A program made the translations under genes and the position numbers. Of a DNA stretch of 64,000 nucleotides, positions 309-63,855 are shown one piece after another (within the stretch, counting starts at the first letter, position 1; each line of letters begins with the position of its first letter). The stretch lies in assembly GCA_976226885.1 (NCBI GenBank), contig OZ320316.1:109306001-109370000 (forward strand), written 5' to 3'. Source of the stretch: Iphione sp. A-MEVVRFRX5 (Eukaryota). A model generated the notes under the pieces. That model was given only the letters and a program-made list of their open reading frames with translations, was not told where the DNA came from and searched no databases.

Positions 309-490
309 AGCGGGTGGACCTGAGTGCTGTCCACCTGCAACTTGATAATCCTGTGGTCCATGTGGGCTCCTACACACATGTTCGGCTGCGCACGAGGGTG
401 CAGATTGACAATGGTGGCATCTTAAATGACTATGGCATCACTATGTACCTTTCTACAGACACCTACATTGACATCAGAAATGACAAACAG
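309..490 (+). CDS. Exon 1 in window (module 1)
   Basis: ccttccAG|..|GTcagt; phase 1->0; RVDLSAVHLQLDNP...YLSTDTYIDIRNDKQ. Confidence 0.85.
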
Positions 491-3400
491 GTCAGTCAAC
501 CATACGTTAACCCTTTCAGCCCGAACAATGCCTTGATCAAGGCTTTCAATATCGTTTTCCTTAAAACCATTTAGGCAAAAAATAGGTGTGTTTCTGGTAA
601 CCCATCCCTACCTAGTAAAACCTCACCCTACCTAAAAATGTTTGGGCCCCAAAGAGTTTCCAAGGCTAAATTTCCTTAGATATTCATTTTCACAACACGT
701 TTTTGGTTAACTCAGTAGAAAAACAACAAAATCCATGGAAATTCACCAAAAAACTGTAAAACTCATACAGATTGGTCAAAATTCTTGATAATGTCTTTAT
801 TATTATTGAAAACCAGAGGAAGAAACTGGAAAAAAATCTAAATAAAAAAAGATACCCCTCCCTACCTAGGTTTTTGCTGGTTGTTACCAGAAACACACCT
901 ATTTTTTGCCTTATGTTTTACCTACACATCCAATGGTTGATACCTCATGTCTATCATATTTATATGATAATTCGATTTCAAATGAGGAGGTGCGTTTATT
1001 GGTGGTTGTGGGAGCTTTGAGAGAATTGACCATTTCCAGAGAACTGCTCTTAAATGTAGAAATGGGATTTTTTGTGATACAGGCCACATTTGAAACGTGT
1101 TGACATTACTGATAAATAGGTTGGTGCATGAACTTTACAGTTGTCTAATATTCAATAAAAATATTTTACCCCTGAAAGATGTTGGTCGGATTGTTCCAGG
1201 AAGCTGAGAAAGTTGTGCAGTTTTACAGGACGTTTTCTTTCTTTTTCGATAAACACTGCACCTTTATCGCCGAATATAGACCGCCAAAACAACCTTAAGG
1301 TGGCTGTGACTTTACTGTGGTCGAATATTATTATGGAAAGTCCCATTCTGTACCTTTTTTTAATAAAAGGGAGGGTACTAGTACCACAGATCTAGTATAT
1401 ATGGATTGGACAACCAAGTCATGCATACCAGTGTAATTACACAAGGAATGGCAAATTGTTTTAACCCAGTTATGAGATAGGGGGTCAAACCTCATGAGTC
1501 AGGAACTATTTTCACAAGCCCCTCAACTGGGACATGGGTCAGAGGTGTGTAGGCTGTATTCAAGGGCAGGAACACCCCATGACAGAGTTTGTGCGGTCTC
1601 ACCAGGGTTCTACACTATCTTTGCGATGTACACAACCACATTTTGTGTTTTTGTTCATTAACTAATTTCTATACAGGAAAAATACCATTGCAGCAATACC
1701 TTTTTCCGTTTATTTTACTATGCTGCAAAATAAGATATTATCAACAGAAAACGCCTTTTATGATGTCAGAAAAGGTAAACGATTTGGCTGTAGCTTGGGT
1801 GGTTGACACTGTAGTGGTCGGTGGATTGTCCTGAGGGTGATCTTGCCTACATTATGGCCTGTCTGTAGGTGATCTGACTGTAACATGGGGGATAACTCAT
1901 GTTGTGTATTTCTAAATAGGCCTACAAGTTACAATAGCCCTCTGGTGCCCTGTTTTAAAATCATTTAAATGTACTGTGGTTTGAGTCAACTAAATTCCCC
2001 TAGAAAGGTTGTCTATTGTCTGCTATTGTTTTCGTAAGGTGACCATCTTGCCGCCCCACTTTGAGCGCGTCTCGCCCGTCTCCACGACTTCCGGTTACCT
2101 TGACCTCAGCGGTACCGGCCTCAAACTGCCGGACGTGGAAACGAATTCTGCCGACCACAAGTACTGTGGCGCCATCTATATTGGCGTCATGGTTGACGGG
2201 GCGACCCCCCGAGACGCCGCCCCGTGTGAGTCAGACTCACTGAAAAACAACCCAAAATAAGAGTTTTCTTATGTGTGATGGACAGGAATTTTATTCTGCT
2301 TTTTTCTCTCTTTCTTCTTAAATTGTTTCCTTTTCTCACATTAAAAAGAAATGATTTTGACAGTGATAGAAAAATAGTTCCTTATAAAAATGCAAAATAT
2401 CTTGTCAAAATTATCCGCCCAGAACTAAGATGTATTGGAAAGAATCGCCCTTATTATAAGATTGTCTCGATTTTAAAAATATTACAAAATTTGACTTTAT
2501 TTCTTCGTGTGGCAAAGAAAATAATTTTTTAGTTGTTAATAGCCTGATTTCACATTTTTTTGTGTATATTGAGGGATTCGTTCTAAAAGTGGCTACCCGA
2601 TTGAAGGTCAAATCACATGGGTGACCAAACCAGAGGAGAGACCGATAATTTATAAAAACCACCGAAGGGACATAATAAATTCTTTAGGCTTAGCGTGAGC
2701 AAATTGTACATCTCTGTCTCCTACGTGGGATTCAACTCTACATTACTGTAGTGCATAGAAACCTACAGAGAGTGTACATCTCGTGATTTCTCGTTGCAGA
2801 TCACGGAGAGGTTAGCGAGCCTGATGAGTGGAATAACTTCATGGTCACACCCATCACTGTCATATGCAGCGGAGGTACGTAGAATAATTAATATTCATGC
2901 TGTCATATGCCACAGATGTACATAGAATTACTAATATTCATGCTGTCATATACAGTAGAGGTATGTAGAATGTGTAATATTCATGATGTCATAAGCAGTG
3001 GAGGTATGCAGAATGAGTAATATGTGTGCTGTCATATACCACAGAGGTTCATAGAATGAGTTTTATTCATGCTGTCATCTACAGAGAAAGTATATAGAAT
3101 GAGTATAATTCATGCTGTCATATACGGTGGAGGTAATTAGAATGTGTAATATTCATGCTGTCATAAGCAGTGGAGGAGTGTAGAATGAGTAATATTTGTG
3201 CTGTCATATACCACAGAGGTACATAGAATGAGCTTTATTCATGCTGTCATCTACAGAGAGAGTATATAGAATGAGTAAAATTCATGCTGTCATATACGGT
3301 GGAGGTTATTAGAATGAGTAATATTCAAGCTGTCATGTACAGTGGAGGTACATAGAATGAGTAATATTCACACGGTCATAATCAGTGAAGGTACGTAGAT

Positions 3401-6400
3401 GGGGTGATAGTCACACTGTCATAATATGCAGGGGAGCTACATAGAATTCACACTTGTCAGCCATTTGGGGAATGATGTCGAGTGAGAGAAAGGGTTGTCA
3501 GACAGTGAGAGGAGAAATCAGTGTGTTTGTGCGCTCGCGCTTGTGTGTGTGTGTAAAACAGTTCTACAGGAAATCTATGAGGCAGCGAATGAGCCCTATT
3601 CAAGATCGCAATGTCACTCTTTTAATGGCGGCCAGGTTGCGTTAATGAATGTGGCACCTAAATGAATACCATTATCAAGGCATCTGGTAACAAAACGCTT
3701 TCAGAATGAAGGATGCATTACATATTATATACGTTTTTGTGGCCCAAGGCCACTTTCTTTATGGATCATTTAAAAGGAATTACCTAAAAAGGCACACCAA
3801 AACAAATAAAGATGTATTCATCAACAAGGCAAAATGGTTTATTGGTAATAATAAAGCCAAAACCATGATGTTATAATCAGTTTGGCTCTGAGAACAAAGT
3901 CTCCCTTAGCGAAGTTACTTAACAGCATTAAACACATCTTCTTCTTTAAGAGAAGTGCAGATTGACTTCACGTTGTCAGATCACCTTGAAGTCACATCCC
4001 AAACTCCCAAGGTCTCCCACATACCTTCACATGGTTTAGTTCTGTTATGATGTGTGATTTTCGTCTAATAATATTCTCTAATGAAGGAAACATATTTCTA
4101 TGAACGAGTGTATATTGTATAAATTAGACACCGTGGATTTATCCATTATTGATTCTATTTTTCTCACTTTCGACGTGTAAATCAAGCTTCCGTCAGAGTG
4201 AACTCACATATGCACAGGGTCCAATGAATAGTTAACCGCACGCTAGGAACTGTAACCATCGATAATACCGCTGCGGCACTGTCATGCGCAGTAGTTGACT
4301 TCCGTCTCATCACCAAGCAGTGATCGATTCCTCATTCCCGACCCGCCATTAAATATGAAGATGTTGTTCAGATGGATGTCACTCGTTCATCAGCATAGCC
4401 CGTGGTCTCCATGAGTCTCCTCCTCTGTCAATGATAGATGAGCGTTTCACTTGACGACGGGAATACATGGATCTTCAGGAAGTAGAATATATCAACTTAG
4501 GAATTTTTTTGGTAGAAGAGAAAAAAGTTAATGTGGTCCATTAGAATCTGAGTATCAGATTTATGTGTATAAATATTCATCATTGATATATACATGTGCA
4601 TTTGTAATATGTATCATTATGACCCCGGTCTGGGACCTCCCTGCAATTAGGACAGCCCACATAATGGGCATACAATGAGCTGATCGCTGATCGCTGAAGT
4701 ATCGGGTAATGCGGACTTCAATTTTACGTAATTGCGACATCGTCTCAATTTTAAGCGATCTGATTGGTCAATTTGCACCATGACATAATAATTTGTAAAA
4801 AAAATTATGTCCACACTACCCGTTTATTCCATCGCTGGCAATCGGTCGATTAGCCTATCACATGTATCACAGTGATGTTCTGTTATCAGCATCATAACAC
4901 AAAAATAATGGTGTACATGTATTTTTACATTGCCCTATGGCTATTACATTAGGTAAAGTGTAAAGGATATGTAATTGATGGTAATTTCCCTGATTGTCGT
5001 ATTGATACAGGTCATCCGTGCATTTAGGAGGCTGCACATGGTATTTTCCTGAAATATTTCAAGTAAACAAGCACCTTTGGCACAATCTGCAGAAGTTTTG
5101 TGGTATTTCCTTCATGTGAAGTATCTCGATAATCCCACAATCACACTGGCCAATGGAACAATAACATCAATGCAGTGGACAGATCCCCCCCTCCTTGTTG
5201 TCTCGTAGAGAGGTTTTCTATTTTATCTATGTTAATTGTTGGAACCCTTCTTCGGAATTGTAGTGGGCAGTCTTTCCATGTTGACAGCCTTCCCACATAG
5301 TGCATTACATTTAGATATGCTTTTTGGACGTTGGCTATGTTCCCACCTCTGTGTGCTACCGAGTATATGGCCAGCCCAGCTGTCTGCCTCCCTTATAAAG
5401 CTCTTACTTTGTTATGTTGCCATGACTCCTGTTTTAGGTCTGACTCTGTTGTTTTTATTGGTAATGGGAGGTGATATGTCTTTTCTGTGGCTATATATGC
5501 CCATGATATTACACAGTTTTGACTATGTCTCTTCAGGCACATGATGTCGAATGTTTTGTTCTTTTTATTATGAGGAAGACACTGTAGATAGTTTATATAT
5601 AGTATGTGTATTACATTCAATCTCCCCTCCTGGTTTTTCTGGAGGGTTGAATGAATTTTTACGACGAGGTTAGTGTTTCCTGATGGTTAATTGTGTTCTC
5701 CATCTAGTAGATTCATTCCATTAGGGGAAATTGTTCTTAGTCTGTGGATCCATTTGTTCTCTAAGTTTAATCTGATGAGTTACATTTAGATTGGACTTCC
5801 TATCAATGTGTCCGAGAATGTGTATTACACCTGAATATTACGTCACCAAATCGCTCCAAACGTGATTTTTTTATGCGGCATATTACTTCGCACATGGACA
5901 GACTGCCTTAGAAGGCCCATAAGGATGGGCCAGGTAGAGTCATTATGTGTCTCCATTAGGTTTGATAAACATATCGAGGTTATGCACTAGTCATGTCTTT
6001 CCTGCGAGGCAGAGGCAACACTATATACATGTATACATGTTTGCATGTGTTTCTGTGTGAATTCAATATATGCAACAGGGTTACCGAACGAATGACCTTA
6101 TGAACACCTACCCCAATGTATCTTTTACATAATCAAAAATAAATGCGATCAACAAGAATTTTTTTTATATATTTGGATGTGGGAGGGACGAATGTAAACC
6201 TTTCGCATTCACACATGCACACACGTGTATACTAATACAGCACAGTATCATGAAATTAGATTTTAAAAAAAAATTCACGCAATTTTCAGCCAGTGCCCTT
6301 TGGTTAGAACATCTTTGACCCGGCTTTTAGATTGAATATCGCAATATCAAAATTCCCTTTTTCTTACAGATTTTTTGGCGCTGACAGATTTCAGCTATTC

Positions 6401-9400
6401 GCTCTTTTACGGCCAGGGTCCCATCACCAATGAATACTCGATTCCAGCCACCTTGACCGCACAGGTTCACGTGCTTCGCCCTCCTAGTGAGAAAAACGTT
6501 GGAGTCTCCCAGTTTGATCTCCGGCTCTACATTAATAATTCCAACACAATAGAGATGGGTGAGTACAAAATCAAGTAGGTATATGCAGTAGATCTGGTTA
6601 ATAAGGTCTGGGTAAGTATATTATAGATCTGGACAAGTGTATAATGGATCTGGGTAAGTATATACAGTGGAGTCTCTACTTACGACCACCACTCTGTTCC
6701 AAGCTTAAATGGTCGTAATGGCAAATTTGGTTGTAAATAGAGTATCAAATGTATAGAAATTAGCATTTTGGTACCCATCTCAGATGGTCTGAAATAGAGA
6801 ATGGTCAGAAATTGATGCGGTCAGAAATAGAGACTCCACTGCAATATATTTATACACTAAAAACATCTATATCTATATCTAAAAGAACATTTAGGTTTGA
6901 AATGTCCTTATTAGGACATTAGAACGTCCACATATAAGGCCTTAAAAAAATTCTGTCTTTCCGGTAACAAGCTGAAAAATTACAGGGTCGGTCGGTAGGT
7001 CACATTTTTTTTATTTTTCTATTTTTTTCAAGGCTAAAGGATCCTGAATTAAACAAATGTCAATGGTAATGTCCCTTATACTGGTTAGATATTAATATCA
7101 TATGAAAGCTAGTAACATGAGGAGCAATTTGATGTATAGAACATGTCTCTATCATTATTCCTTCTGAAGTTATTCAAAAAAAAAATAATAAAAATTTACA
7201 AATGGTTCTAATGTAGGGTCGGTTGGGTTACCGGAAACACAGAACTGTTTTCTATTAGGCCTAATGTAAAACTGCCGTTTACATTGAAGACTACCTCCAC
7301 CACGCCTCACCCCCTTACCCGTTACCCCCCCCCCCCCCCCCCCCCCACTTACATTTGAAGCCTTTCGCTTGAATTATCAGACGCTGCGCCAATGCTAGTG
7401 GACATCCTGAGACTTGGTAAGACTTACCAGTCTACGGACCAGGTCCTTAACGTCAGGGCCACAGGGGAGACCGTGTACCTGACGAAGGTGGAAGTCTGGC
7501 TTGACGCAGACAACTTCCCACCATTGAACATAGAGAAGGAGTGGTGGCTCCATCTGATGGTCGTCGAGGCGTCGACGAGTGACCGACAAGAAGTGGTTGT
7601 AGCGAACAACTATAGGGCTGCACCGGTGAAGGCACAGGCGAAACAAGTCGGTAGAGGTAAGCTCGACAGGTTGGGTGTAAGTTGTTCAGTCTTCCTACAA
7701 TCACCTTGGGTACTTGCCGCCTCTCCCCTTTGTAGCATCTTAAAACCATTGGTTCTGCTTGACTGCACATACAAAGGCATAGCAATACATCGTAAATCGC
7801 AAGGCCAGTGTAATTAATGTGTTGTACTAAACATTTATATAATATACTGCATATTCCATGCTGCACTTACCATTTATACTACACCATTTAGGCTACTTCA
7901 CCGGGTGTACTGATTTGATGTTTTAAATTATATGTATTTACGACAGTCTGTAGACTATTTTGAATACATTTGTTTGAAAACTAATTCTAATCCACCTTTC
8001 AGCTACCAGTGCCAACTGGGACACAGTGACCGACTTTCCGGATCGACTTGTCATAAATGGTAAGATTCACTCAATGGTAGGATTTAAGAAATGGTAGGGC
8101 TCAATTTATAATGGTAAGATTCAATCAACCAAAACCACAAGTAGTTTCTATGTACAACAAAGGTTTGATTCTTCTGTCATTAACTTGAATGGTTCAGAAT
8201 ACCTACCTGGGGTCCTCTCAGAATGAGTCATGGGATCACGTGACCCATTCTACTCCAACAAGAGCTGGCATTCACCAGAGATATAAACCCTTCAGAGAAA
8301 TCACAGAGTTATACAGAACGTGGTTTCTTAGAATGAACTGTTGAAGGTGTTCAAGGCTTTTACAACATCAGATTTAATTTTCATGTTAAACAGCAGTCTA
8401 GTATAATGTCAGCAATGTTATGATACTAAAGCAGGGGGGGTCTTTATCATTTTGCACTGCAATCTAAATATGAGTTCCAGGGATGACCTAGTGACCTAAA
8501 TTGATACAAATCTGCATGTGTAGCTTACAGTGGAGAAAGGACTCCTAGTAGATCCTTGGTAACCCTCTCAAAAATGACAGCATGGCCCAAGTTTGGGTCG
8601 TGACCCTAGGGTTAATAGACCCTGTGCTACAGTAAAGAAATTCATTTGACTACTAAACCAAGCTGATGATTGAGGTCAGGTTGCTAAACTGTTAAACCCC
8701 GCCTTGCAACTCAGGAAATTAAAAGTTATTTGTGTTTCTGGTAACTCAACCAACACAGATTTTGGTGCCAATGGAAGGTTTTATTTGATTATTGATTTGT
8801 AAACATCTTGGCCATGAAATAGATTACATACAATACACCGTTTTGGTGCTTAGGCCATTAGCTGTCATTTTGATATGTATATGTTTAAGCAGGGAAGGGA
8901 TTCTTCCAAGCTTAGAAAATACTCTCAAGCATCATTTTGACATTTGTTTGCACCGAACCAAAAATCCATCGACATAGAGGCCCTATCCATTGTTTTAACG
9001 TGTTACCAACAACACGTTCTGTTTGTCGCCTTATGTCTCTAATCGGACAATAAACAAATATCTTCTCTTAATCTTAATATCGGGCGTATCTCTCTACTTC
9101 AGACACGCTGGAGGAGGACACTTTCACCGCTAGTTTCACTCAGGGCAGCGCTTTCGAGGATATCTTCTGGTCTATCGATAACATGTAAGCAATTATAACA
9201 CTTTGGCCCCCCCTATTCGTTTATAATTATCGAGTTTATTAACATGCGGCTTTATACGGTGCATTTCAACTTGATTTATCTTTATGGCCTTTGTTTGACC
9301 TTACCATCTTATATGAATCTGTGCAATTTTGTTTTTGATTTTACTGAACCAGTTAAGTAAACTGAAAAGATGAAAAACAGTTATAATTTGATGGTTTGTT

Positions 9401-57400: not shown

Positions 57401-60400
57401 GTGGAACAGCATAACCGGGGAGACCTTTGGTTCTTGGTGAAAGTGTCTGCATTTATGGGATGTCAGTAGTCCTGGATAGTTCAATGTATGACCAGGTTGT
57501 TATTCTGTTCTGTTAAAGAGTGTCCTTGGCCTCTGGCAACAAAGTGCGAGGGTAAGTGGTAACCCTCACATTCACACAGTCTTGGGATGGAGTACAGTAG
57601 AACAGCACAACCGGGGCAGACCTTTGGTTCTTTGGTGAAAGTGTCTGCATTTATGGGATGTCAGTAGTCCTGGATAGCTCAATGTATGACCAGGTTGTTA
57701 TTCTGTTCTGTTAAAGAGTGTCCCTAGTCTAAGGGTGCCCCTGTCTTGGATATCTCCAGTTGTGAGATTCTGCTGCATATACAGTGGAAACTTCTTTACG
57801 TGTATACCTCTGCTATGAAAGTCTTCTTTGAGATCACTTCATTGTCAGAAGCTTCACAAGCGGAGTTATAAACAAACAGCCATTAGAACACATTGGTCTT
57901 CTTTATAATCCCATGTATTGGTCTCACTTTTTATATTGATAGTATTATTGATTTTGTTATAAAGGAACTTGGTCTTAGAAGATTGGTAATAGATATGAAG
58001 GTGTTTTATCATAATTTTATGGCATTTCGCCATCCTCATGGATTTTTCTGACATGGTGTTATATTTTGGTTAGGAAATGTCTGTCACTCGCAACCAATGT
58101 CATTTATTTTCAGTATTCTCGGAGATTCAGATGAAGGTCTCATTAGAGTCTCTCTGTAGGCTTCCTAGTTTTGTCTCTGGAGGATATTTTGCTCCTAACT
58201 TTATCCTTATGGTGACATTGCTTTACTGACAAGGCTTAATAAAATAAGTTTGTGTTTCTGGTAATGCGACTGACCGATATTTTAGTCCCAATGGAATGTT
58301 TATTGTTTCTTCTTCTGTGAATATCTTTGGACTGAATAATGATAGAAACATTTACAATACACCATTGTGTTCCTCAGATCACTAAAAATCCAAGCACTCA
58401 AAGCATTATTATCAATTAATTTCTTTGCTATCTGGATGAGTTAATGTTAAAAAAAAAAAATTTACCTACCGACCGACCGACCTTCAATTTTTTCAACATG
58501 TTACTGCAAATACAGACGTTTTTAGGACTAAGCTTGATTTGCTTTGTGTTATTGCAGGTGATGTTGATATTGAAATAACCTCGTTTGATGGAATGACGGG
58601 TCTGTCTGTGAGAATTATGTGGGATGACTTCAATATAAGACCAGGTAAGTCCAATTTCCATCTAACTAAATGATTATGTAACCAAAGAGACAGTAGCGAA
58701 GGAGGGGGATAGACAGCGTGACAGCACCAGCACAGCATTAACAGTAATGGACTGCACCGTTTGACTAATGGTCAGCTGTCAAACTAGACTAATTGTCAGC
58801 TATCAAACTAGACTAGTGGTCAGCTGTCAAACTAGACTAATTGTCAGCTGTCAAACTAGACTAGTTGCCAGCTGGCAAACTAGCCTAATGGACAGCTGTC
58901 AAACTAAACTAATTGTCAGCTGTCAAAATAGACTAGTGGTCCGTTGTCAAACTAGACTAATGGTCAGCTGGCAAAGAAGCCTAATGGTCAGCTGTCAAAC
59001 TAGATAGAAGCTCTGTTTGTATTTTAACGTGTCCCAGTGTGAACGCAAAGTATAGTTGACTTTGTGCACAACTCAGCTAGGAATGCAACTGAGAATTCAG
59101 GGTGCTTTGCTTGGTCCAAATGATTTATTTCTGATAATATAACCAACAAAGAACCTCTCATAGTAAAGGGGAAAGTTTCAGGGCTGGCTCGTCACAGCAC
59201 CAGTAACTCATACTGGGAGGTAAATATCTAAATTTGTTTGTAACTAACAGAACCATCTGAAAATATATATTTGATACAGTATCTAAGATGAAACTCTAAA
59301 TGTTATCTGTAGTGTAATCCTTATATTTCAGAAACTAATATCTTTTAAATACTCAACCAATCTTGAGTAATATTGAGAAGCCAATTTTCACTGAAGTTAA
59401 GTTTTGTCAATCAGAGTAGATTTGAACATCCAGAAACCAATCCCTGGCTCCTGGCCTTCAATTATTATTAAATAGCTGGTCAATACACTATAACAGGACA
59501 GCAAATACTAAAAGTACCATGGTCAGTTTTTGAATTTTCATTCCAGTTATGCTGAAAAGTTTGTTTTTGCACAGAAAAATTATGTGTTTTTTGTGGAGGA
59601 TAGACCTCACTTGGGCCTGTAGACAGCCATGTATGTTATGGAAGGCGCCTTGTATGGATCTCTGTGCAGAAACCAATATGGCAGGTCTGCCCTTTCTTCT
59701 CTCTCCTTTCTAGAGTCGTTCACCTACCGGATGTGGATTTCCCATGATGCCCAGCTGGATCCTGACTTAGATTGGCGCCTTAAATATGGCGGAGAGGTGT
59801 CAGTGGGGTACCAGTCTGGCGCTTCCTACGACGCCCACACAGGCGTCATTGACATTGCCGACGTTCCAGACGCTTACTGCCACAATGCCTTTATTATCGC
59901 CCAGGTGGACTTGAGCAATGGCATAATGGAGCGTAATAAGGGCAACAATATTAAATCAGCCGCAGTTACCAAATCATGTGACACAGGTGCGTTTTACTTG
60001 TTTTTAATTATTTTTGTTTTTTAATTCAGTTGATATATGTCTCACCAGATCAAAGAATTCCAGGCCTCGCTGCTCTGAGTGGTTTTACAATGACATTAAT
60101 AATGCAGTCATAACCTTTAATGAGTTAGCTGGTTCGACCTTTTTGTTTTTTGTTCAACATATGAATGTCAACCCAAATTATAACCCTTTTTCCATGAAAG
60201 TAATTCACAAAAGATGAAATGACAAGAAAAGCATAAGAACATAAGATAACATGACAGGGATACCATGACAACAATATAAATATAAGCTAAAACGATGAGC
60301 ATGAGATAACATGACAGACAGAGATAACAGGAAAAATCTGAGAGCTAGGGATCTTTTCAGCATGAATATGAAAGCAGATGCAGTTGCCTGTGCTTCTGTC

Positions 60401-63400
60401 TTTTTGTTTCTCTAGATATCATGTGGTTCACCATTGAGGCTCCCCCGATGGTAAATCCGACGTACAACAAAGTATTTTCCATGCAAATGGACCTGAGAGT
60501 CGAATGCTACAGACCGGATCCATCACAATGTCCGCCCCTGGATGCTGCCCCGGGTTCGGATTACATCTCTTTTGTTCTACAGGTAAGTCACCTTCCACAG
60601 TCAAGGTCAGCTTCCAGAGTCAATGTCAATTTCCAAAGTCCAGGGCATTTTGCACAGTAAATGTCACCTTCCATAGTCCAGGTCAACTTCCAAAGTCAAG
60701 GTCAACCCCGACCGTCAAGGTCAACTTCCAAAGTCAAGGTCACCCTACCACCTCTTTTCTCGCTTTTATCCCCTTGTATCTTCTACCCAACATTGACGCC
60801 TGTTTCCAGCCTTGTGTCGATCTGTGTGTTTGCTTCGCTCATATGTATTCACCTATAATGTTATAGAAGGAAACTTGCGTGTGAAGGCCTCCACCAGATG
60901 GCCCAGAGTATTTCATCTGCCTTATAATTGTCTGTATATGGGTAACCAGAGGGAAGGACAGGCAATTCAATGGAGTTTTGTTTATTGTACAATAGAGGTG
61001 TGAACGTTACGCTGGGGTTGAGTCACGGCTTCCGACACCCGATGCGGGAATATTTGAATGAACTTTGACATGATGTTTATGTTGCAGTTGTATGATGGAG
61101 ATCTGATCCCTGTGGCAGACCTGGAACCTAATGTCATCGACGGCACTTCTGAGAGGCTGGTGACTCCCGAAATACTAGGCAATCGCTTGGATCAAGGTAA
61201 CCAGCAGATAAGTAATACAATGTTACCAGTCATGGCAAATCAAGGTTGGGGGAGGAAAACCATTGTCGAAGGTTAATGGAAAGTCATTTTAATTTGTCCT
61301 TGCCCAAAAAGTCATAGAATACTCATATTATTACATCCTCAGCTACCAGGTTCGGGTGGTAGGAGGGTCTGTAAGGCGCAGGCTGTAAAGGTAGTGAGGA
61401 GGCTTTTACGAATTCCTTGAAACGCTAACCTTTTCGGGGAGGATAGTCATTGATTTGTGTCTGTAGTGACTAAATTCGAGAATCAGGTAGTTGTAAGAGA
61501 TTATTACTCTTACAAGTCTCTGTACACGGCCTTCTTAAATTCCGTTGTATATATATTTTCTCCTAAAGATGTTGGCGAAGAACTGCCATGGGAAACATTT
61601 ATATCATGGCTATGTTTAGTGAGATTTGTATGACAACCTTTGCATTATTTACTTAAAGCATGTCAGCTTCAGCATCTTTAGCCGTAATTTCCATGTGAGT
61701 CTATTTTAAGATAACACTAACGAAATACTGATAACTTGATAACACGGATAGTAGTACTGATAGCACAGTGATGGTGATACCACTTACAACATTGATAGTA
61801 ATTCTATTTATATTAATGATAAGAGTGATAAATGGGGTAACATCAAAACAGTAATTAAAACTGCTGACTAAAATGACAATGCTACCAGTCATGAAAATAC
61901 CACTGACAAAAATGAAACACGGCTACCAGTAATGGAAATACTAATGACAGTGATGAAATACTGCTTATAGCAATGAAAATATTGCAGAAAATAATGAAAC
62001 AATGAAACACTGAAACACTACCAGTTATGAAAATATCAATGACAGTGTTGAAACACTAATAATAGAAATGAAAATGTTATTTAGAACAATGAAACACTGC
62101 TTACAGTAATAAAAATACTGGTGACAATAACAAAACACTGCAACCAGTAGTGACAATACAGCTGACAATAATGAAACACTGTGATACCATTGACCCGATT
62201 GATTCACCCTTGCAGGACCACTACTTGTAGAGATCAGTGGTGATTTTATAATGAAGAACAGAACACAGTGTGAGGATATCAGGTACATGGAGGTGAAACT
62301 TCAGCGAGGAAATGCACCCGTCGGACCCACCAGCCCTCTGAGCCTGGGACCCCCCGCCAGCAAGACTCGACTGACCCCCTTCACGGTGATCTGTGATGAA
62401 CGTGAGTATCAGGGACACCCAGCACTCCGGGAGAAATGCAGTAGAGACTCGGTTAGCAACCCCCTTTCTGCAACAACCATTGCTTCTTCTATAGAGCCAG
62501 AGCAGAGAAAGTACAAATTTAATATAATGAATATAACCTTACAACCAATCTAACAACCACTTCTTGTAAAGGCCAGAGTAAAAATGTGGTTGCACGAATA
62601 ATGATGCCCAAAATATCATATAATAGTATTCTATATTTTAATTACTATTGTTATATATAAACCTAATATTATAAACATCAAAATGGTGTAACATAGATGA
62701 TAGCATAGCACCTTGTGTACCTTTTATGACTGTGTTCATTATCTCATGGAACATGGTAATCTTACATGTTCATTTGATTACTGATGCACATGGCTGTTTA
62801 CCTCAAAGTATGCATACTGTTGTATGGGTTCCTGTAAATCTTGGTGGCTTAGGCTCTCCTTGCCTACTTCAGAAAGCCTATTCTCTCACCACAGATTCCA
62901 GTAAGAATGAGATCATGAGAATGGAAGGTCCGTATCTTGCTCACTTAGCTGAGGTATATAAATTATGTTTAGCTGTAATGATAAAGCATATAGTAATATA
63001 TCCTAGTATATGTCTCAGGACATCTTAAGTAGCCAATGTCCATGCCACTTCATCCCTTTATGTTTCAGCCTATTTTGTCAGAATCATCTCATACTAGGGC
63101 TGCCTACACTTTTATTTTAAATCATGTTGTCCTCTCTGACAAGCAGACAAATATAATTAAATGAAATAATAGATGGGACGGGAAAATTTAGCAATTTCTC
63201 CTAATGGAAACTTTTTGTTGGACGTGACAGTATGAATATTGTCTGCCATGTATCACAGATTTGAGTGTCCTTTGAATTTTCTTTCACAGGATCTATTGAT
63301 TTGGCTGTGACATCCTTCATGGTGGGGAATGCTGCCTCACCAGTGAACCATTCAACTCAAGCCCTTCCCTTAGTCATAGAAGTGGATGTCACAGCAACCA

Positions 63401-63855
63401 ACTGGCCCCCGGCGGACGACAAGTACAGACCTCCCTTCAACATACGTATTCAAATCACATGTAAGTCTATGTACACCTCTCTTTACCTAAAGGCCTGGTA
63501 CAGTTACTGGCCAAACTATTATTTAATCTAGGTCAGTTTATCTCTCTGTGTAGATAATGAATAGTTTCTTGTTTTAGTGTGTTGAAAATAAATGGAAATG
63601 CCTAGGTACTTTCACAAAATATAAGCACTATTGGTCTATGATCTCCTCAATTTGGGAAAAGTCATGAAGGTCATGAAAGACGCTTTTTTGGCGCGCTCCT
63701 AACGACTTTGGGACAGGTGACATATCCTTACTTTACATGTTTTAGCTGCAGCCATTCCAGATGGAGAAAGCATCAACCTGCGCTATGTCCCTGGTACAAA
63801 CGTGACCTCTGGCATCCCGACTACTTTTATGACAGGCTCTCTCCAACTGACAGAG
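309..63855 (+). CDS. Partial giant multi-exon gene (56 exons, ~3,380 aa in window, 5' and 3' ends outside window) encoding an extracellular protein of ~24 tandem CARDB-like, Cys-stapled beta-sandwich modules
   Basis: Manual splicing: 55 GT-AG introns, all phase-compatible, no in-frame stop over 10,142 nt. Recurrent CARDB (PF07705)-like motifs, e.g. FCGEQYLHLVVDAADEIFESTEANN, LCGQDNLTLTVVLDPNDDVTETDESNND, YLSSDPVLDVSSD. Many NxS/T sequons. Domain name is from motif recognition, not an HMM search. Confidence 0.88.
574..910. mobile_element. PIF/Harbinger-type MITE, family A
   Basis: ~28-bp TIR GGCAAAAAATAGGTGTGTTTCTGGTAAC; 3-bp TSD TTA (571-573 / 911-913); related copies at ~10328-10590, 11176-11502, ~15827-16144, ~36434-36707. 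Confidence 0.8.
2039..2225 (+). CDS. Exon 2 (module 1)
   Basis: cgtaAG|..|GTgagt; phase 0->1; VTILPPHF...KYCGAIYIGVMVDGATPRDAAP. Confidence 0.88.
2800..2874 (+). CDS. Exon 3 (end module 1)
   Basis: ttgcAG|..|GTacgt; phase 1->1; YHGEVSEPDEWNNFMVTPITVICSG. Confidence 0.85.
2857..3440. repeat. ~43-45-nt minisatellite spanning the exon 3 donor
   Basis: ctgtcata..cagtggagGTa..tagaatgagtaatattcatg, ~13 copies. Confidence 0.85.
6370..6558 (+). CDS. Exon 4 (module 2)
   Basis: ttacAG|..|GTgagt; phase 1->1; DFLALTDFSYSL...FDLRLYINNSNTIEM. Confidence 0.88.
6665..6841. mobile_element. Tc1/mariner-type MITE
   Basis: CAGTGGAGTCTCTA...TAGAGACTCCACTG TIR, TA on the left; similar CAGTGG-ended elements at 29443-29621 and near 17113 and 20680. 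Confidence 0.62.
6938..7261. mobile_element. PIF/Harbinger-type MITE, family B (same TIR core, different body)
   Basis: GGCC...TTTCCGGTAAC / GTTACCGGAAAC...GGCC; TSD TAA/TAA; relatives at ~18341-18648, ~28587-28880, ~39540-39742, ~58233-58528. Confidence 0.78.
7381..7656 (+). CDS. Exon 5 (end module 2)
   Basis: tatcAG|..|GTaagc; phase 1->1; DAAPMLVDIL...QEVVVANNYRAAPVKAQAKQVGR. Confidence 0.88.
8003..8059 (+). CDS. Exon 6 (module 3)
   Basis: tttcAG|..|GTaaga; phase 1->1; ATSANWDTVTDFPDRLVIN. Confidence 0.72.
9103..9184 (+). CDS. Exon 7 (module 3)
   Basis: cttcAG|..|GTaagc; phase 1->2; DTLEEDTFTASFTQGSAFEDIFWSIDN. Confidence 0.8.
9411..9640 (+). CDS. Exon 8 (end module 3)
   Basis: ccgcAG|..|GTggaa (weak donor); phase 2->1; LDSSDVV...KYCGAVYGILKLQ...IVLECDST. 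Confidence 0.85.
9787..10091. repeat. Interstitial TTAGGG-variant (telomere-like) array
   Basis: GTGTTAGGGTTAGG(A/G)TTAGG(C/T)TAGGGCAT units. Confidence 0.9.
10328..10590. mobile_element. MITE family A, truncated
   Basis: left TIR and body colinear with 574-910. Confidence 0.7.
11176..11502. mobile_element. MITE family A, opposite orientation to the 574 copy
   Basis: GGCC termini, TSD TAG/TAG, internal sequence is the reverse complement of 574-910. Confidence 0.8.
11909..12027 (+). CDS. Exon 9 (module 4)
   Basis: tgtcAG|..|GTaggt; phase 1->0; DTISLSDLQVDNPP...TCTKAACDAS. Confidence 0.85.
12515..12581 (+). CDS. Exon 10 (module 4)
   Basis: gattAG|..|GTaaga; phase 0->1; VTINVVAKLTNEAATQTFSETL; bridges the phases of exons 9 and 11. 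Confidence 0.72.
12645..12890. repeat. 33-nt minisatellite
   Basis: cagactgacagagcactgtcaatcagatctgac, ~7 copies. Confidence 0.85.
13127..13303 (+). CDS. Exon 11 (end module 4)
   Basis: ttgtAG|..|GTaagc; phase 1->1; DFSSVRRR...SCAGAESLTVTITD...DNNELDVALPAFQCDHT. Confidence 0.85.
13283..13780. repeat. 67-nt tandem array spanning the exon 11 donor
   Basis: GTAAGC at 13304, 13371, 13438, 13505, 13572, 13639, 13706, 13773. Confidence 0.92.
13975..14300. repeat. ~19/58-nt minisatellite
   Basis: ctgtgagaactgaccataa / ctgtgacagctaaccatga. Confidence 0.85.
14348..14623 (+). CDS. Exon 12 (module 5)
   Basis: ctccAG|..|GTaagt; phase 1->1; EKINIEATSL...YISADETIDQNDYK...LTLSDD. Confidence 0.9.
15527..15754 (+). 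CDS. Exon 13 (end module 5)
   Basis: gtttAG|..|GTgagt; phase 1->1; VGFTLPSAGLERFCASGKMVYVCVRLD...ETKEYDNDVC...ITCDDVVIATEQK. Confidence 0.88.
15827..16144. mobile_element. MITE family A
   Basis: TIR-like ends (gtgtttctagttac / gtaaccaaaaacacaccta...ggcc); body matches the 11176 copy. Confidence 0.72.
16540..16776 (-). mobile_element. tRNA-derived SINE, 5'-truncated
   Basis: colinear with 28037-28327; degenerate B box only. Confidence 0.7.
16880..16980 (+). CDS. Exon 14 (module 6)
   Basis: ttacAG|..|GTacgt; phase 1->0; LDVLILGDVVIRAG...YAMELEFD. Confidence 0.82.
18341..18648. mobile_element. MITE family B, reverse orientation, inserted inside a splice-site repeat array
   Basis: TIRs gtgtttctggtaac / ttaccggaaacac; body is the reverse complement of the 6938 copy. 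Confidence 0.72.
18765..18951 (+). CDS. Exon 15 (module 6)
   Basis: ctccAG|..|GTacag; phase 0->1; LGVRNLHSEQL...GIDAGQTLRYTVT. Confidence 0.85.
19200..20225. repeat. ~140-160-nt degenerate tandem array spanning the exon 16 acceptor
   Basis: cttcttcAGtctccgtgg...gacct copies separated by (CA)n-rich segments. Confidence 0.85.
20189..20341 (+). CDS. Exon 16 (end module 6)
   Basis: ctccAG|..|GTgagt; phase 1->1; VSVAAGDLSSLCTEYEPAG...LLTLACLPS. Confidence 0.85.
20988..21272 (+). CDS. Exon 17 (module 7)
   Basis: ctccAG|..|GTaacg; phase 1->1; AAPELHSSLQAD...VVNHG...PISPGRSHRMKGT. Confidence 0.88.
22070..23400. repeat. ~65-nt minisatellite array
   Basis: cccattgtcagtcctgaggacatcaaacagtacactagtaacaacaataccagtaaactgagaga with degenerate flanks. 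Confidence 0.88.
23580..23717 (+). CDS. Exon 18 (end module 7)
   Basis: tttcAG|..|GTaagt; phase 1->1; VQLTLSSAECTAM...SDNFMSKFT; the split codon T|GT gives the terminal Cys. Confidence 0.82.
24488..24868 (+). CDS. Exon 19 (entire module 8)
   Basis: atacAG|..|GTaagt; phase 1->1; AQPASYTDLSV...WFSNDGQLGASD...FCQMSSVYLLANV...TFSCPG. Confidence 0.9.
24850..25260. repeat. ~65-78-nt array spanning the exon 19 donor
   Basis: ggga|GTAAGTt copies at 24869, 24947, 25022, 25087; variants at 25161 and 25236. Confidence 0.82.
26223..26380 (+). CDS. Exon 20 (module 9)
   Basis: atgcAG|..|GTacgc; phase 1->0; NIFQMVEVVDL...VRNVGG...SNFHFQ. Confidence 0.88.
26687..26862 (+). CDS. Exon 21 (module 9)
   Basis: tgtcAG|..|GTaagg; phase 0->2; LEHTYDGSTW...LPAGGST...ALCTDLSSNNG. 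Confidence 0.85.
27351..27454 (+). CDS. Exon 22 (end module 9)
   Basis: gcacAG|..|GTaagt; phase 2->1; RVRVRLYQG...DDYIVKQLTCTT. Confidence 0.85.
27812..27882 (+). CDS. Exon 23 (module 10)
   Basis: ttgtAG|..|GTagga; phase 1->0; DFVDLSVTQIVLGSASTVTTLQVQ. Confidence 0.78.
28037..28327 (-). mobile_element. tRNA-derived SINE (most complete copy)
   Basis: reverse complement: A box TAGCTCAGTGG, B box GGTTCAATCC, body shared with the 44234 and 16540 copies. Confidence 0.8.
29087..29233 (+). CDS. Exon 24 (module 10)
   Basis: ttgcAG|..|GTatgt; phase 0->0; SVRTGASGTIGYTLEVYMSRDESLEEARD...NFNLQ. Confidence 0.87.
29672..29807 (+). CDS. Exon 25 (end module 10)
   Basis: ttacAG|..|GTacat; phase 0->1; VDSDEIYNYCGNMYYIAKV...DPDPDNNVMAVAYQIDCQLA. 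Confidence 0.88.
30489..30640 (+). CDS. Exon 26 (module 11)
   Basis: tttcAG|..|GTgagt; phase 1->0; DIYEIKDGDI...AELNN...NLMWK. Confidence 0.88.
32290..32569 (+). CDS. Exon 27 (end module 11)
   Basis: ctccAG|..|GTgagc; phase 0->1; LYGKVGAGY...ALCAMGVDHLFLGAEL...LHNNYYSVPFSCLQT. Confidence 0.9.
33327..33455 (+). CDS. Exon 28 (module 12)
   Basis: ttgcAG|..|GTaagg; phase 1->1; ASTVDLHVR...LGEPQPFTLEVYANIS; acceptor pyrimidine tract is weak. Confidence 0.72.
33474..33946 (-). mobile_element. Solo LTR (Ty3/Gypsy-like by 4-bp TSD), antisense to the gene
   Basis: TGTAACA...TGTTACA inverted termini; TSD TCTT/TCTT; on the minus strand TATATAAG (~33590) lies upstream of AATAAA (~33520). Confidence 0.75.
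34206..35534. mobile_element. 1.3-kb non-autonomous DNA transposon (TA TSD; Tc1/mariner-pogo type)
   Basis: ~24-bp TIR GGGG(G/A)A(G/A)GGTGGGTAATTTGGACC, TA on both sides; perfect internal 20-bp inverted pair 34406-34425 / 35130-35149; no transposase ORF. Confidence 0.72.
35844..36017 (+). CDS. Exon 29 (module 12)
   Basis: ctccAG|..|GTtagt; phase 1->1; GTVADVWPSV...GYEFILSS...SIHFDL. Confidence 0.85.
36072..36289. mobile_element. CAGGCC-terminated MITE with 5-bp TSD (hAT5-like)
   Basis: CAGGCCCGTAGCCA...ACTGGCCTG; TSD GGTCA/GGTCA. Confidence 0.7.
36434..36707. mobile_element. MITE family A, truncated
   Basis: body and right TIR match the 11176 copy. Confidence 0.68.
36769..36945 (+). CDS. 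Exon 30 (end module 12)
   Basis: cgacAG|..|GTaaat; phase 1->1; HLCGQDNLTLTVVLDPNDDVTETDESNNDAAL...DLCD (canonical CARDB C-terminal motif). Confidence 0.9.
37252..37551 (+). CDS. Exon 31 (module 13)
   Basis: cctcAG|..|GTaaac; phase 1->1; ADRPVSDWGV...SELYIDT. Confidence 0.88.
38253..38435 (+). CDS. Exon 32 (end module 13)
   Basis: ttgcAG|..|GTgagt; phase 1->1; VEISKK...LCGRFCYLGLVINPD...IRLDCPSLK. Confidence 0.85.
38520..39135. repeat. 4-copy tandem duplication spanning the exon 33 acceptor
   Basis: catgtttatcattccatcAG|gtgtcgg; exon-like starts at 38547, 38708, 38855, 39032. Confidence 0.9.
39032..39322 (+). CDS. Exon 33 (module 14)
   Basis: catcAG|..|GTaagt; phase 1->1; GVGFVKITAAP...LINKG...NAFCAPLG. 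Confidence 0.87.
40130..40243 (+). CDS. Exon 34 (end module 14)
   Basis: ttgcAG|..|GTgagg; phase 1->1; SATLLCITI...DEPEDNYMCFS...RFDCPR. Confidence 0.85.
40779..41222 (+). CDS. Exon 35 (entire module 15)
   Basis: ttgcAG|..|GTacgt; phase 1->1; DISLSNLAL...EACSAGSEMFICAHY...DENNVNDCVC...VKCEE. Confidence 0.9.
41809..41987 (+). CDS. Exon 36 (module 16)
   Basis: ttacAG|..|GTtagt; phase 1->0; NIDIEAVFF...FYLSADDQLNIDDVH. Confidence 0.88.
42427..42598 (+). CDS. Exon 37 (module 16)
   Basis: ttgcAG|..|GTgaga; phase 0->1; LPYLWFDYG...ELCGTSYIIYEADS. Confidence 0.85.
43010..43335. repeat. 36-nt minisatellite
   Basis: ggaccactgtgcagtggtcttactattggaatgata, ~9 copies. Confidence 0.88.
43525..43596 (+). 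CDS. Exon 38 (end module 16)
   Basis: ttctAG|..|GTaggt; phase 1->1; GHDFQEKLETNNVFAAPVIVQCDG. Confidence 0.85.
43886..44184 (+). CDS. Exon 39 (module 17)
   Basis: cttcAG|..|GTcagt; phase 1->0; TLPLIMQSRDVLEL...VINVG...HTFRDIR. Confidence 0.85.
44234..44532 (+). mobile_element. tRNA-derived SINE
   Basis: TAGCTCAGTTGG A box, GGTTCAATCC B box, body ending tagatggtagtatgctacccc. Confidence 0.8.
44653..44693 (-). ncRNA. Minimal type I hammerhead ribozyme motif (Penelope-like element type)
   Basis: minus strand uuccu-CUGAAGA-a-guc(aaccuacaa)gac-GAAA-C-GUU-gggag: core, 3-bp stem II, palindromic ACGU stem III, 5-bp stem I. Confidence 0.55.
44879..45026 (+). CDS. Exon 40 (end module 17)
   Basis: atatAG|..|GTaagt; phase 0->1; ATIRGAALSKATCKDLAFVQLCLQ...ENHC...KNCETP. 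Confidence 0.83.
45110..45775. repeat. ~36-nt degenerate minisatellite abutting the exon 41 acceptor
   Basis: atatttacccatcaggttcagtctagtctgaggtgt. Confidence 0.82.
45788..46000 (+). CDS. Exon 41 (module 18)
   Basis: ttgcAG|..|GTaacg; phase 1->1; YHRDLVPLDF...GLYLTHTPEF...FNEA. Confidence 0.87.
46512..46700 (+). CDS. Exon 42 (end module 18)
   Basis: ccacAG|..|GTagga; phase 1->1; FCGEQYLHLVVDAADEIFESTEANNRLTKRVIVKCAG (canonical CARDB motif). Confidence 0.9.
46882..47111. mobile_element. CAGGCC-terminated MITE with 5-bp TSD (hAT5-like)
   Basis: TIR CAGGCCCGTAGCCA / TGGCTACGGGCCTG; TSD GATCT/GATCT; fragments of the same family near 14951-15030 and 25910-26145. Confidence 0.75.
47760..48390. 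mobile_element. PIF/Harbinger-type non-autonomous element, family C
   Basis: TIR GGCCCGGTTTCCAT / ATGGAAACCAGGCC; TSD TTA/TTA. Confidence 0.75.
48509..48776 (+). CDS. Exon 43 (module 19)
   Basis: tactAG|..|GTatct; phase 1->2; DLWSLGIFSF...SVCCVKDDC...AEGFC. Confidence 0.85.
48930..49310. repeat. ~47-nt minisatellite
   Basis: taccattagataatccctc...tctactccctcatgagaggataa. Confidence 0.8.
49347..49504 (+). CDS. Exon 44 (end module 19)
   Basis: gtacAG|..|GTgtgt; phase 2->1; NFTFMG...GACLSDAINLHLAV...LDNNEKVIPFPCSP. Confidence 0.87.
49839..49990 (+). CDS. Exon 45 (module 20)
   Basis: ttgaAG|..|GTaagg; phase 1->0; GRRTQPELRDL...NFRLSFE. Confidence 0.8.
50370..51100. repeat. ~100-nt degenerate tandem array
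   Basis: cattctcatcagcc..ctgtggt...ttttggctggtag..tgtgttatgtgtggcacccatg. Confidence 0.7.
51140..51341 (+). CDS. Exon 46 (module 20)
   Basis: cttcAG|..|GTaagc; phase 0->1; LVGPP...YALFLSMDADLDPSDVKL...TDFTN. Confidence 0.88.
51570..51890. repeat. ~95-nt degenerate tandem array
   Basis: catgactagggacacc...ctttatagctgtacctccatg. Confidence 0.7.
52291..52422 (+). CDS. Exon 47 (end module 20)
   Basis: ccgcAG|..|GTaagc; phase 1->1; GFTAQLGYCGSFILIFYVED...EVATTNNMAALPVYVACLN. Confidence 0.87.
54459..54677 (+). CDS. Exon 48 (module 21)
   Basis: ctccAG|..|GTatga; phase 1->1; DVFALSQL...LTNVG...AYLSSDPVLDVSSDRFLG. Confidence 0.9.
54820..55170. repeat. Low-complexity AGTATACA/AGTAGCAA repeat
   Basis: caaagtatacaagtatcaaagtacacaagtg units. 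Confidence 0.75.
55387..55596 (+). CDS. Exon 49 (end module 21)
   Basis: cttcAG|..|GTaagt; phase 1->1; GLMEALTEGLDPGET...ENCSVARFLLLKV...SESSNNFKAMPLVTRCD. Confidence 0.88.
55575..57730. repeat. 196/197-bp tandem array (11 units) spanning the exon 49 donor
   Basis: GT(A/G)AGT at 55597, 55793, 55981, 56177, 56374, 56570, 56767, 56963, 57160, 57356, 57552. Confidence 0.93.
58233..58528. mobile_element. MITE family B-like
   Basis: ggc..gtgtttctggtaatg left end; acctaccgaccgacc motif; degenerate right end. Confidence 0.55.
58558..58644 (+). CDS. Exon 50 (module 22)
   Basis: ttgcAG|..|GTaagt; phase 1->1; GDVDIEITSFDG...DFNIRP. Confidence 0.8.
58765..59005. repeat. 24-nt minisatellite
   Basis: gtcagctgtcaaactagactaatt. 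Confidence 0.85.
59714..59986 (+). CDS. Exon 51 (end module 22)
   Basis: ttctAG|..|GTgcgt; phase 1->1; ESFTYRMWISHDAQLDPDLD...YCHNAFIIAQVD...ERNKGNN...KSCDT. Confidence 0.9.
60416..60582 (+). CDS. Exon 52 (module 23)
   Basis: ctctAG|..|GTaagt; phase 1->0; DIMWFTIEAP...ECYRPDPSQC...SFVLQ. Confidence 0.87.
61088..61196 (+). CDS. Exon 53 (module 23)
   Basis: ttgcAG|..|GTaacc; phase 0->1; LYDGDLIPVADL...GNRLDQ. Confidence 0.83.
61700..62195. repeat. Degenerate A-rich ~21-nt repeat abutting the exon 54 acceptor
   Basis: aatgaaa(c/a)actgctaccagt-like units. Confidence 0.7.
62216..62401 (+). CDS. Exon 54 (end module 23)
   Basis: ttgcAG|..|GTgagt; phase 1->1; GPLLVEISG...TQCEDIRYMEVKL...FTVICDE. 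Confidence 0.87.
63290..63460 (+). CDS. Exon 55 (module 24)
   Basis: tcacAG|..|GTaagt; phase 1->1; RSIDLAVTSF...PPFNIRIQIT. Confidence 0.87.
63746..63855 (+). CDS. Exon 56 (module 24, gene continues past window)
   Basis: ttttAG|..|GTaggt; phase 1->0; SAAIPDGESINL...GSLQLTE. Confidence 0.8.

Follow-up and report, generated by a model that had tools for sequence, protein, structure and literature searches.

The 64,000-nucleotide stretch analysed here (the window; contig OZ320316.1 of Iphione sp., positions 109,306,001 to 109,370,000) holds most of one very large predicted plus-strand animal gene, made of 24 different copies of a module homologous to the prokaryotic CARDB domain. The same gene, module for module, exists unnamed in lancelets (Branchiostoma), in the annelid Owenia fusiformis and in a third animal represented by contig L001. 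In L001 and Owenia the array continues into the domain cassette typical of mucin-4, and L001 ends in a predicted transmembrane helix. Both ends of the Iphione gene lie outside the window.

The window is AT-rich animal-type DNA (39-44% GC, no N), in which long stop-free pieces of the plus strand already show the recurring motifs D-L-x-V, YLSxD, C-G-x-x-Y-L, E-x-x-E-x-NN and V-x-C. To obtain a gene model from the genomic sequence alone, we have written a dynamic-programming exon chainer that combines codon log-odds, splice matrices and frame-compatible chaining. Seeded with generic metazoan splice matrices and 14 obvious pieces, it returned 53 plus-strand exons over 309-63855. After self-training, and after one manual correction that a relaxed run then reproduced, the model comprised 54 GT-AG exons, 9,887 nt and 3,295 codons with no stop. 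The chain scored 788, against 125 for the minus strand and about 10 for shuffled sequence, although this contrast is inflated because the parameters were trained on the plus chain. Independent signs agreed with the model. Exon GC was 53.5% against 41% for the whole window, and an HMM built only from four other animals' proteins hit 27 plus-strand exon pieces, with only 1 of all 40 hits on the minus strand. The initial annotation had described a giant protein of at least 24 tandem CARDB-like modules over the same interval, and this observation is confirmed; its count of 56 exons and more than 3,380 aa differs slightly from ours.

The exons grouped into the following modules, all on the plus strand (Cys positions are module residues; "animal HMM" is the animal-only HMM scored on joined exons; P0006 is a Branchiostoma protein and P0011 an Owenia protein, both introduced below):
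309-2874 (+), M1, exons 309-490, 2039-2225 and 2800-2874; 147 aa, Cys pair at 103/145, 38.8 bits on the animal HMM; probably corresponds to the first module after the signal peptide of P0006 (10 bits at residue 59).
6370-7656 (+), M2, exons 6370-6574 and 7361-7656; 166 aa, degenerate, no Cys; reciprocal best match to L001 module 1.
8003-9640 (+), M3, exons 8003-8059, 9103-9184 and 9411-9640; Cys pair present, C-half HMM hit at E 6e-19; reciprocal best match to L001 module 2 and P0006 module 3; the two small exons are less certain.
11909-13303 (+), M4, exons 11909-12027 and 13105-13303; 105 aa with 4 Cys; reciprocal best match to P0006 module 4; its donor at 13303 lies inside a 67-nt tandem array.
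14348-15754 (+), M5, exons 14348-14623 and 15527-15754; 47.5 bits on the animal HMM; reciprocal best match to L001 module 4 (34 bits) and P0006 module 5 (55 bits).
16880-20341 (+), M6, exons 16880-16980, 18765-18951 and 20189-20341; Cys pair at 107/143; the first two exons are weakly supported.
20988-21272 (+), M7, single exon, short and degenerate; 94 aa holding only the N-half, no Cys; no C-half exon was found in 21.2-24.5 kb.
24488-24868 (+), M8, whole module in one exon; Cys pair at 89/124; AlphaFold pLDDT 74.6 and pTM 0.70, predicted 7-strand sandwich.
26223-27454 (+), M9, exons 26223-26323, 26687-26862 and 27351-27454; Cys pair at 84/124; weak HMM support, so the exon model is uncertain.
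27812-29807 (+), M10, exons 27812-27882, 29087-29233 and 29672-29807; Cys pair present, C-half HMM hit at E 2e-12, 21.7 bits on the animal HMM.
30489-32569 (+), M11, exons 30489-30640 and 32290-32569; reciprocal best match to L001 module 9 (51 bits) and P0006 module 9; 32% identity by tblastn to P0001 (described below).
33327-36945 (+), M12, exons 33327-33455, 35844-36017 and 36769-36945, with borders revised during model refinement; Pfam CARDB E 6.9e-4 on the last exon; reciprocal best match to L001 module 10.
37252-38435 (+), M13, exons 37252-37551 and 38187-38435; Cys pair present; reciprocal best match to L001 module 11.
39032-40243 (+), M14, exons 39032-39322 and 40130-40243; Cys pair present; the acceptor and first part of the exon at 39032 are triplicated upstream.
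40779-41222 (+), M15, whole module in one exon; AlphaFold pLDDT 80.3 and pTM 0.75, predicted 7-strand beta sandwich; reciprocal best match to L001 module 13 and P0006 module 13.
41809-43596 (+), M16, exons 41809-41987, 42427-42598 and 43525-43596; 60.3 bits over animal HMM positions 6-141; reciprocal best match to L001 module 14 (52 bits).
43886-45026 (+), M17, exons 43886-44184 and 44951-45026; N-half HMM hit; atypical Cys spacing (109/121), so the C-half exon is uncertain.
45788-46700 (+), M18, exons 45788-46000 and 46512-46700; Pfam CARDB E 5.9e-5 on the second exon alone; reciprocal best match to P0006 module 15.
48548-49504 (+), M19, exons 48548-48776 and 49347-49504; reciprocal best match to L001 module 17 (48 bits).
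49839-52422 (+), M20, exons 49839-49990, 51140-51341 and 52291-52422; 50.9 bits on the animal HMM; reciprocal best match to L001 module 18 and P0011 module 1.
54459-55596 (+), M21, exons 54459-54677 and 55387-55596; 57.6 bits over animal HMM positions 3-141; reciprocal best match to L001 module 19 and Owenia module 2.
58558-59986 (+), M22, exons 58558-58644 and 59714-59986; 39.1 bits on the animal HMM; reciprocal best match to L001 module 20 and best window match of Owenia module 3.
60416-62401 (+), M23, exons 60416-60582, 61088-61196 and 62216-62401; Cys pair at 110/151; reciprocal best match to Owenia module 4.
63290-63855 (+), M24, N-half only, exons 63290-63460 and 63752-63855; N-half HMM hit, on the L001 diagonal at module 22; the last exon ends at a GT donor and the gene runs on past the window end.

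Twenty-three modules were complete and one was cut by the window end, with a median length of 140 aa. All 23 introns at module borders were phase 1 and lay 1-3 residues after a conserved Cys; overall, 38 of 53 introns were phase 1. Two Cys about 33-42 residues apart were kept in 19-20 modules, the start motif (D-L-x-V) was found in 17, NN in 15, a YLSxD-like motif in 11 and N-x-G in 10 of the 24 modules. When the exons of a module were concatenated, the N- and C-half exons added up to complete modules on the independent HMM, which supported the joins. A few small exons, in M6, M9 and M17, plus the short M7, remain uncertain on genomic sequence alone, and a search for a missing C-half of M7 and for extra exons in M2, M4, M6, M9 and M17 found nothing convincing.

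We then investigated if the array could have arisen by recent tandem amplification. Mean pairwise identity between modules was 14.7% (maximum 28%), and neighbouring modules were no more alike (12.8%), which ruled out this reading. An all-against-all BLAST of reading-frame pieces was dominated by intronic tandem repeats and did not link modules. The low identity also spoke against several adjacent smaller genes, a tandem family of few-module proteins, in place of one giant gene. Such an arrangement would be compatible with the absence of transcript evidence and with public annotations that split the locus of the relatives into several models. However, all 53 junctions keep the frame with no stop, no start or terminal exon is needed at any of the 23 phase-1 borders, and L001 carries 21 modules in a single exon in the same order as here. 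We consider this alternative very unlikely. A decaying gene, or an artefact of the exon chainer, is less likely still. M2 and M7 are degenerate, some exons score weakly and the chainer was self-trained, but there is no stop in 9.9 kb, exon GC contrasts with the window average, the independent animal-only HMM hits the predicted exons, and twelve reciprocal-best orthologous modules are conserved across phyla. Bacterial contamination was rejected given the GT-AG introns and the presence of orthologues in animal chromosomes.

We next addressed the identity of the module. The curated Pfam model of CARDB (PF07705) matched two exons searched alone. The exon piece 46472-46765 scored 23.7 bits (E 5.9e-5), above the gathering score of 22.7, and the exon piece 36714-37121 scored 20.2 bits (E 6.9e-4), whereas eighteen other exons tested alone gave no hit. 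MAFFT alignments that mixed N-half and C-half exons misaligned YLSxD with the F strand and were discarded. A profile of 15 window modules, searched against 1.84 billion representative proteins, gave 688 hits, of which the second and third were bacterial proteins carrying 21 and 17 Pfam CARDB repeats (E 1.7e-290 and 9.7e-234). The profile retrieved bacterial CARDB proteins at E 3.7e-46 and 1.2e-40, hitting up to 20 CARDB repeats per bacterial protein, and the top 150 hits were mostly Cys-free prokaryotic CARDB proteins. Alignment of a profile of animal modules with one of bacterial CARDB domains (hhalign) gave 97.2% probability and E 3.5e-11 over 98 of 110 template columns, with YLSxD, the I-P turn, the F strand and the E..E.NN segment in register. 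The signature motifs, present in subsets of the 24 modules as counted above, aligned with the invariant bacterial positions.

AlphaFold models of the two single-exon modules, M15 and M8, were both 7-strand beta sandwiches. Foldseek against PDB gave nothing below E 1e-3, structure searches returned only generic Ig-like folds without singling out CARDB, and a PDB sequence-profile search gave no relevant hit. The predicted fold is thus consistent with CARDB but not diagnostic, and the case for CARDB rests on sequence profiles. The possibility that the module belongs to another Ig-like or E-set family, resembling CARDB only through a common fold and a short NN motif, would fit these structure searches and the lack of Pfam hits for most single exons. 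Nevertheless, the profile-profile match covers almost the whole bacterial domain, and Pfam CARDB is the only domain family that matches the modules of the animal relatives (E 1.9e-25 for P0001), which makes this possibility very unlikely.

The prokaryotic CARDB repeat proteins, such as WP_164891191.1 of Botryobacter ruber and MBI4489401.1, with solved domains 3idu (PF1109) and 2l0d, share with the animal array the homologous module, the YLSxD and D..N.V.E..E.NN motifs and long tandem arrays in very large surface proteins. The animal module is about 140 aa rather than about 110 aa, with a longer middle part, carries a conserved Cys pair absent from the bacterial hits, is bounded by phase-1 spliceosomal introns and, in the orthologues, is fused to EGF, NIDO, AMOP and VWD domains. 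Its modules are only about 15% identical to each other, whereas the sampled repeats of the bacterial proteins are 34-66% identical to the first of them. Some prokaryotic CARDB arrays (P0014, P0062, P0112 and P0114, metagenomic and archaeal proteins) carry a single conserved Cys at the very end of each repeat (V-T-C-x-x-P-D-L), and one cluster includes an Archaeoglobaceae C39 peptidase. This may be a prokaryotic precedent for the second Cys of the animal module.

No close relative was found in the databases searched, with tblastn identity of at most 32-43% over single exons. Word-based protein searches with the exon at 40781-41221 and with P0001 residues 1-3300 found nothing beyond P0001 itself, as the family diverges too fast for shared 5-mers. 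Four animal proteins shared the Cys-pair module: P0001 (3,469 aa, from a Logan contig of SRR23372228), P0005 (XP_078689460.1) and P0006 (KAI8495792.1), both from Branchiostoma, and P0011 (CAH1772454.1) from Owenia fusiformis. All four are unnamed. The Branchiostoma and Owenia proteins, annotated as fragments or split models with no name or function, are only 24-40% identical to the window per module.

We have then compared module order. A global rank correlation of module index against best-hit position was weak, because each homologue covers only part of the array, and diagonal and reciprocal-best tests resolved this. Against the 30 modules of the L001 gene, one diagonal (window module i to L001 module i-2) averaged 15.4 bits over 22 pairs, while other offsets averaged 1.1 +/- 1.3 (z 11), and twelve reciprocal-best pairs were perfectly collinear at 21-35% identity. 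Owenia P0011 modules 1-5 corresponded to M20-M24 (z 16), P0006 covered the M1-M18 region, and P0005 covered M19 onward (z 7.5). Owenia introns fell at the same place and phase after the second Cys. The array is therefore not a recent expansion; it predates the split of these lineages, and each position has kept its own identity.

The orthologues were used to examine the rest of the protein. L001 is genomic DNA (34% GC) with very large exons and short GT-AG gaps, and its exon with 21 modules spans 3,475 codons, so such arrays are read as one protein. On the same strand it then carries EGF and EGF_CA, NIDO (7.4e-23), AMOP (8.8e-6), VWD (0.013) and 14 EGF_CA stretches. Its last reading frame has a hydrophobic, transmembrane-like helix at residues 1395-1422 of 1463, followed by a short tail. 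In Owenia the annotated model ends in EGF and a TSP1-like WSxWS exon, and the next 9 kb on the same strand encode EGF_CA (5.6e-8), NIDO (1.5e-7), AMOP (0.024), VWD (0.0065) and more EGF, so that the NIDO-AMOP-VWD series is supported only weakly at this locus. P0006 begins with a signal-peptide-like segment, has no modules upstream, and its modules continue into the next gene model. The public models of the orthologues are split or truncated (Branchiostoma belcheri contig L003, 45388-55387; Owenia contig L002, 1-10000 and 30781-40780), with modules continuing upstream and downstream of the annotated genes and, in Owenia, the NIDO-AMOP-VWD exons assigned to separate small models.

NIDO-AMOP-VWD-EGF is the cassette used to call proteins mucin4-like, including coral skeletal-matrix proteins that also carry TSP1 (PMC4890752); Drosophila Mesh and SUSD2 are more distant. 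L001 and Owenia carry this cassette in the same order, plus TSP1 in Owenia, L001 has a single predicted transmembrane helix and a short tail, and mucin-4-like proteins likewise have a very large repetitive N-terminal ectodomain. The cassette itself is not inside the window. The N-terminal region here is, however, a chain of modules predicted to be folded, acidic beta sandwiches and not a Pro/Thr/Ser-rich O-glycosylated mucin domain (S 7.8%, T 8.1%, P 6.1%). The resemblance would lie in the cassette only, and the protein is not a mucin. No transmembrane-like segment occurs in the window model.

These data bear on a further alternative, a stand-alone secreted matrix protein made only of CARDB-like modules, in which the gene would end soon after the array. 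In its favour, the annotated P0005 and P0006 models show only CARDB-like modules, and nothing but modules is seen inside the window. On the other hand, the Branchiostoma models are visibly split, with modules continuing for 10 kb downstream of P0006 and P0005 matching the M19-onward region, both orthologues that can be followed to the end of the array run into EGF-NIDO-AMOP-VWD, and collinearity predicts 8-9 further modules beyond the window. We regard this alternative as unlikely, but it is the most plausible of the competing readings.

Our preferred interpretation, held with reasonable though not full confidence, is that the window encodes the N-terminal and central bulk of the rod-like ectodomain of a mucin-4-like type I membrane protein. 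What the analysis establishes is the single open frame of 54 exons and 24 CARDB-homologous modules, the added Cys just before strand F and at the end of strand G, the phase-1 borders, the positional orthologues that place the built array in the bilaterian ancestor and, for L001 and Owenia only, the downstream cassette. The remainder is inferred: by orthology, a signal-peptide exon upstream and, downstream, about 8-9 more modules followed by the same cassette; from sequence and models, a disulfide stapling the F-G hairpin, an extended stalk of the order of 100 nm, and Ca2+ binding. In the strand topology of the models, the N-terminal Asp, the B-C loop N-x-G and the F-G loop E..E.NN would lie at one end of the sandwich, and YLSxD..D and both Cys at the other, such that acidic clusters would face the module junctions. 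The chain is strongly acidic (D+E 451 against K+R 188, pI 4.29, every module net negative), and stiffening by Ca2+ at the module ends, as in cadherins, is a hypothesis resting on this acidity, on conserved acidic motifs and on the title of the 3idu entry, which reports bound metal ions. Like cadherin and Fat-type protocadherin ectodomains, the protein would be a long rod of tandem beta-sandwich modules with acidic junctions on a type I membrane protein, but there is no cadherin sequence signature, and no cadherin family appeared in any Pfam scan of the exons or homologues. The stalk could hold the membrane-proximal signalling or adhesion cassette away from an epithelial surface, or act as a spacer or barrier there, the part that the sugar-coated repeat region plays in vertebrate MUC4.

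The interpretation given in the initial annotation was partly supported. The CARDB homology, the single ancient divergent array and the extracellular location held, the latter through the signal-peptide-like N-terminus, EGF, NIDO, AMOP and VWD domains and transmembrane helix of the orthologues. Its proposal of a glycosylated protein was not supported, as 19 NxS/T sequons were found against 23.8 +/- 4.5 in shuffles, and the calcium rigidification it suggested is only inferred. Its statement that the protein matches no named metazoan giant protein needs amending: the relatives are indeed unnamed, but two orthologues end in the mucin-4-like cassette, so the array is probably the N-terminal part of a protein of that known type and not an orphan architecture.

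CARDB is treated as a prokaryotic surface-protein domain. We found no published description of the animal array: in the literature searched, where the word often has unrelated senses, none of the titles listed concerned an animal protein, and the papers examined on this point, only a small part of those listed, dealt with bacterial CARDB only. Here CARDB is the main building block of one of the largest conserved extracellular proteins of several invertebrate phyla. What is new here is the one-to-one, same-order orthology of the modules; CARDB repeat proteins and mucin-4-like membrane proteins are each already known. Unlike in a typical repeat protein, the modules are not homogenised, and each position has been kept as a distinct orthologue across hundreds of millions of years, which suggests position-specific roles along the rod. 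The link to the NIDO-AMOP-VWD cassette gives a named context to genes that current annotations leave split and unnamed, raises the hypotheses of an apical surface spacer or barrier, a junction component or a matrix component, and of calcium dependence, and bears on how mucin-4-type proteins arose. A more speculative and doubtful possibility is that a rod of about 33 modules, each with its own identity conserved since before the protostome-deuterostome split, is the ancestral ectodomain of the mucin-4, Mesh and SUSD2 type of membrane protein, built from a CARDB domain taken over from prokaryotes and adapted with a disulfide staple. Vertebrate MUC4 would then have replaced this folded, calcium-binding rod with a sugar-coated mucin domain.

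The introns of the window contained several repeats, some of which overlapped splice sites. A 67-nt tandem array at 13276-13779 (7.5 copies, 95% matches) starts 28 nt before the donor of the exon ending at 13303 and repeats CAGGTAAGCAAGAG, so that it provides about seven decoy 5' splice sites just downstream of the real one. A 196/393-nt higher-order tandem array at 55574-57727 (11 copies, 92% matches) has the same layout, beginning 22 nt before the donor of the exon ending at 55596 and again copying the 5' splice site. At 38631-39136, a 147/177-nt triplication includes the acceptor and the first ~45 nt of the exon starting at 39032, so that two decoy 3' splice sites with exon starts lie upstream of the copy used in our model. 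An interstitial array of TTAGGG-like telomeric repeats, interrupted every 29 nt, lies inside an intron at 9798-10090. Finally, a dispersed repeat of a few hundred bases, probably a short non-autonomous transposon, occurs in both orientations within introns, at about 635-917 (-), 10391-10698 (-), 11212-11462 (+), 15879-16212 (+) and 36495-36680 (+).
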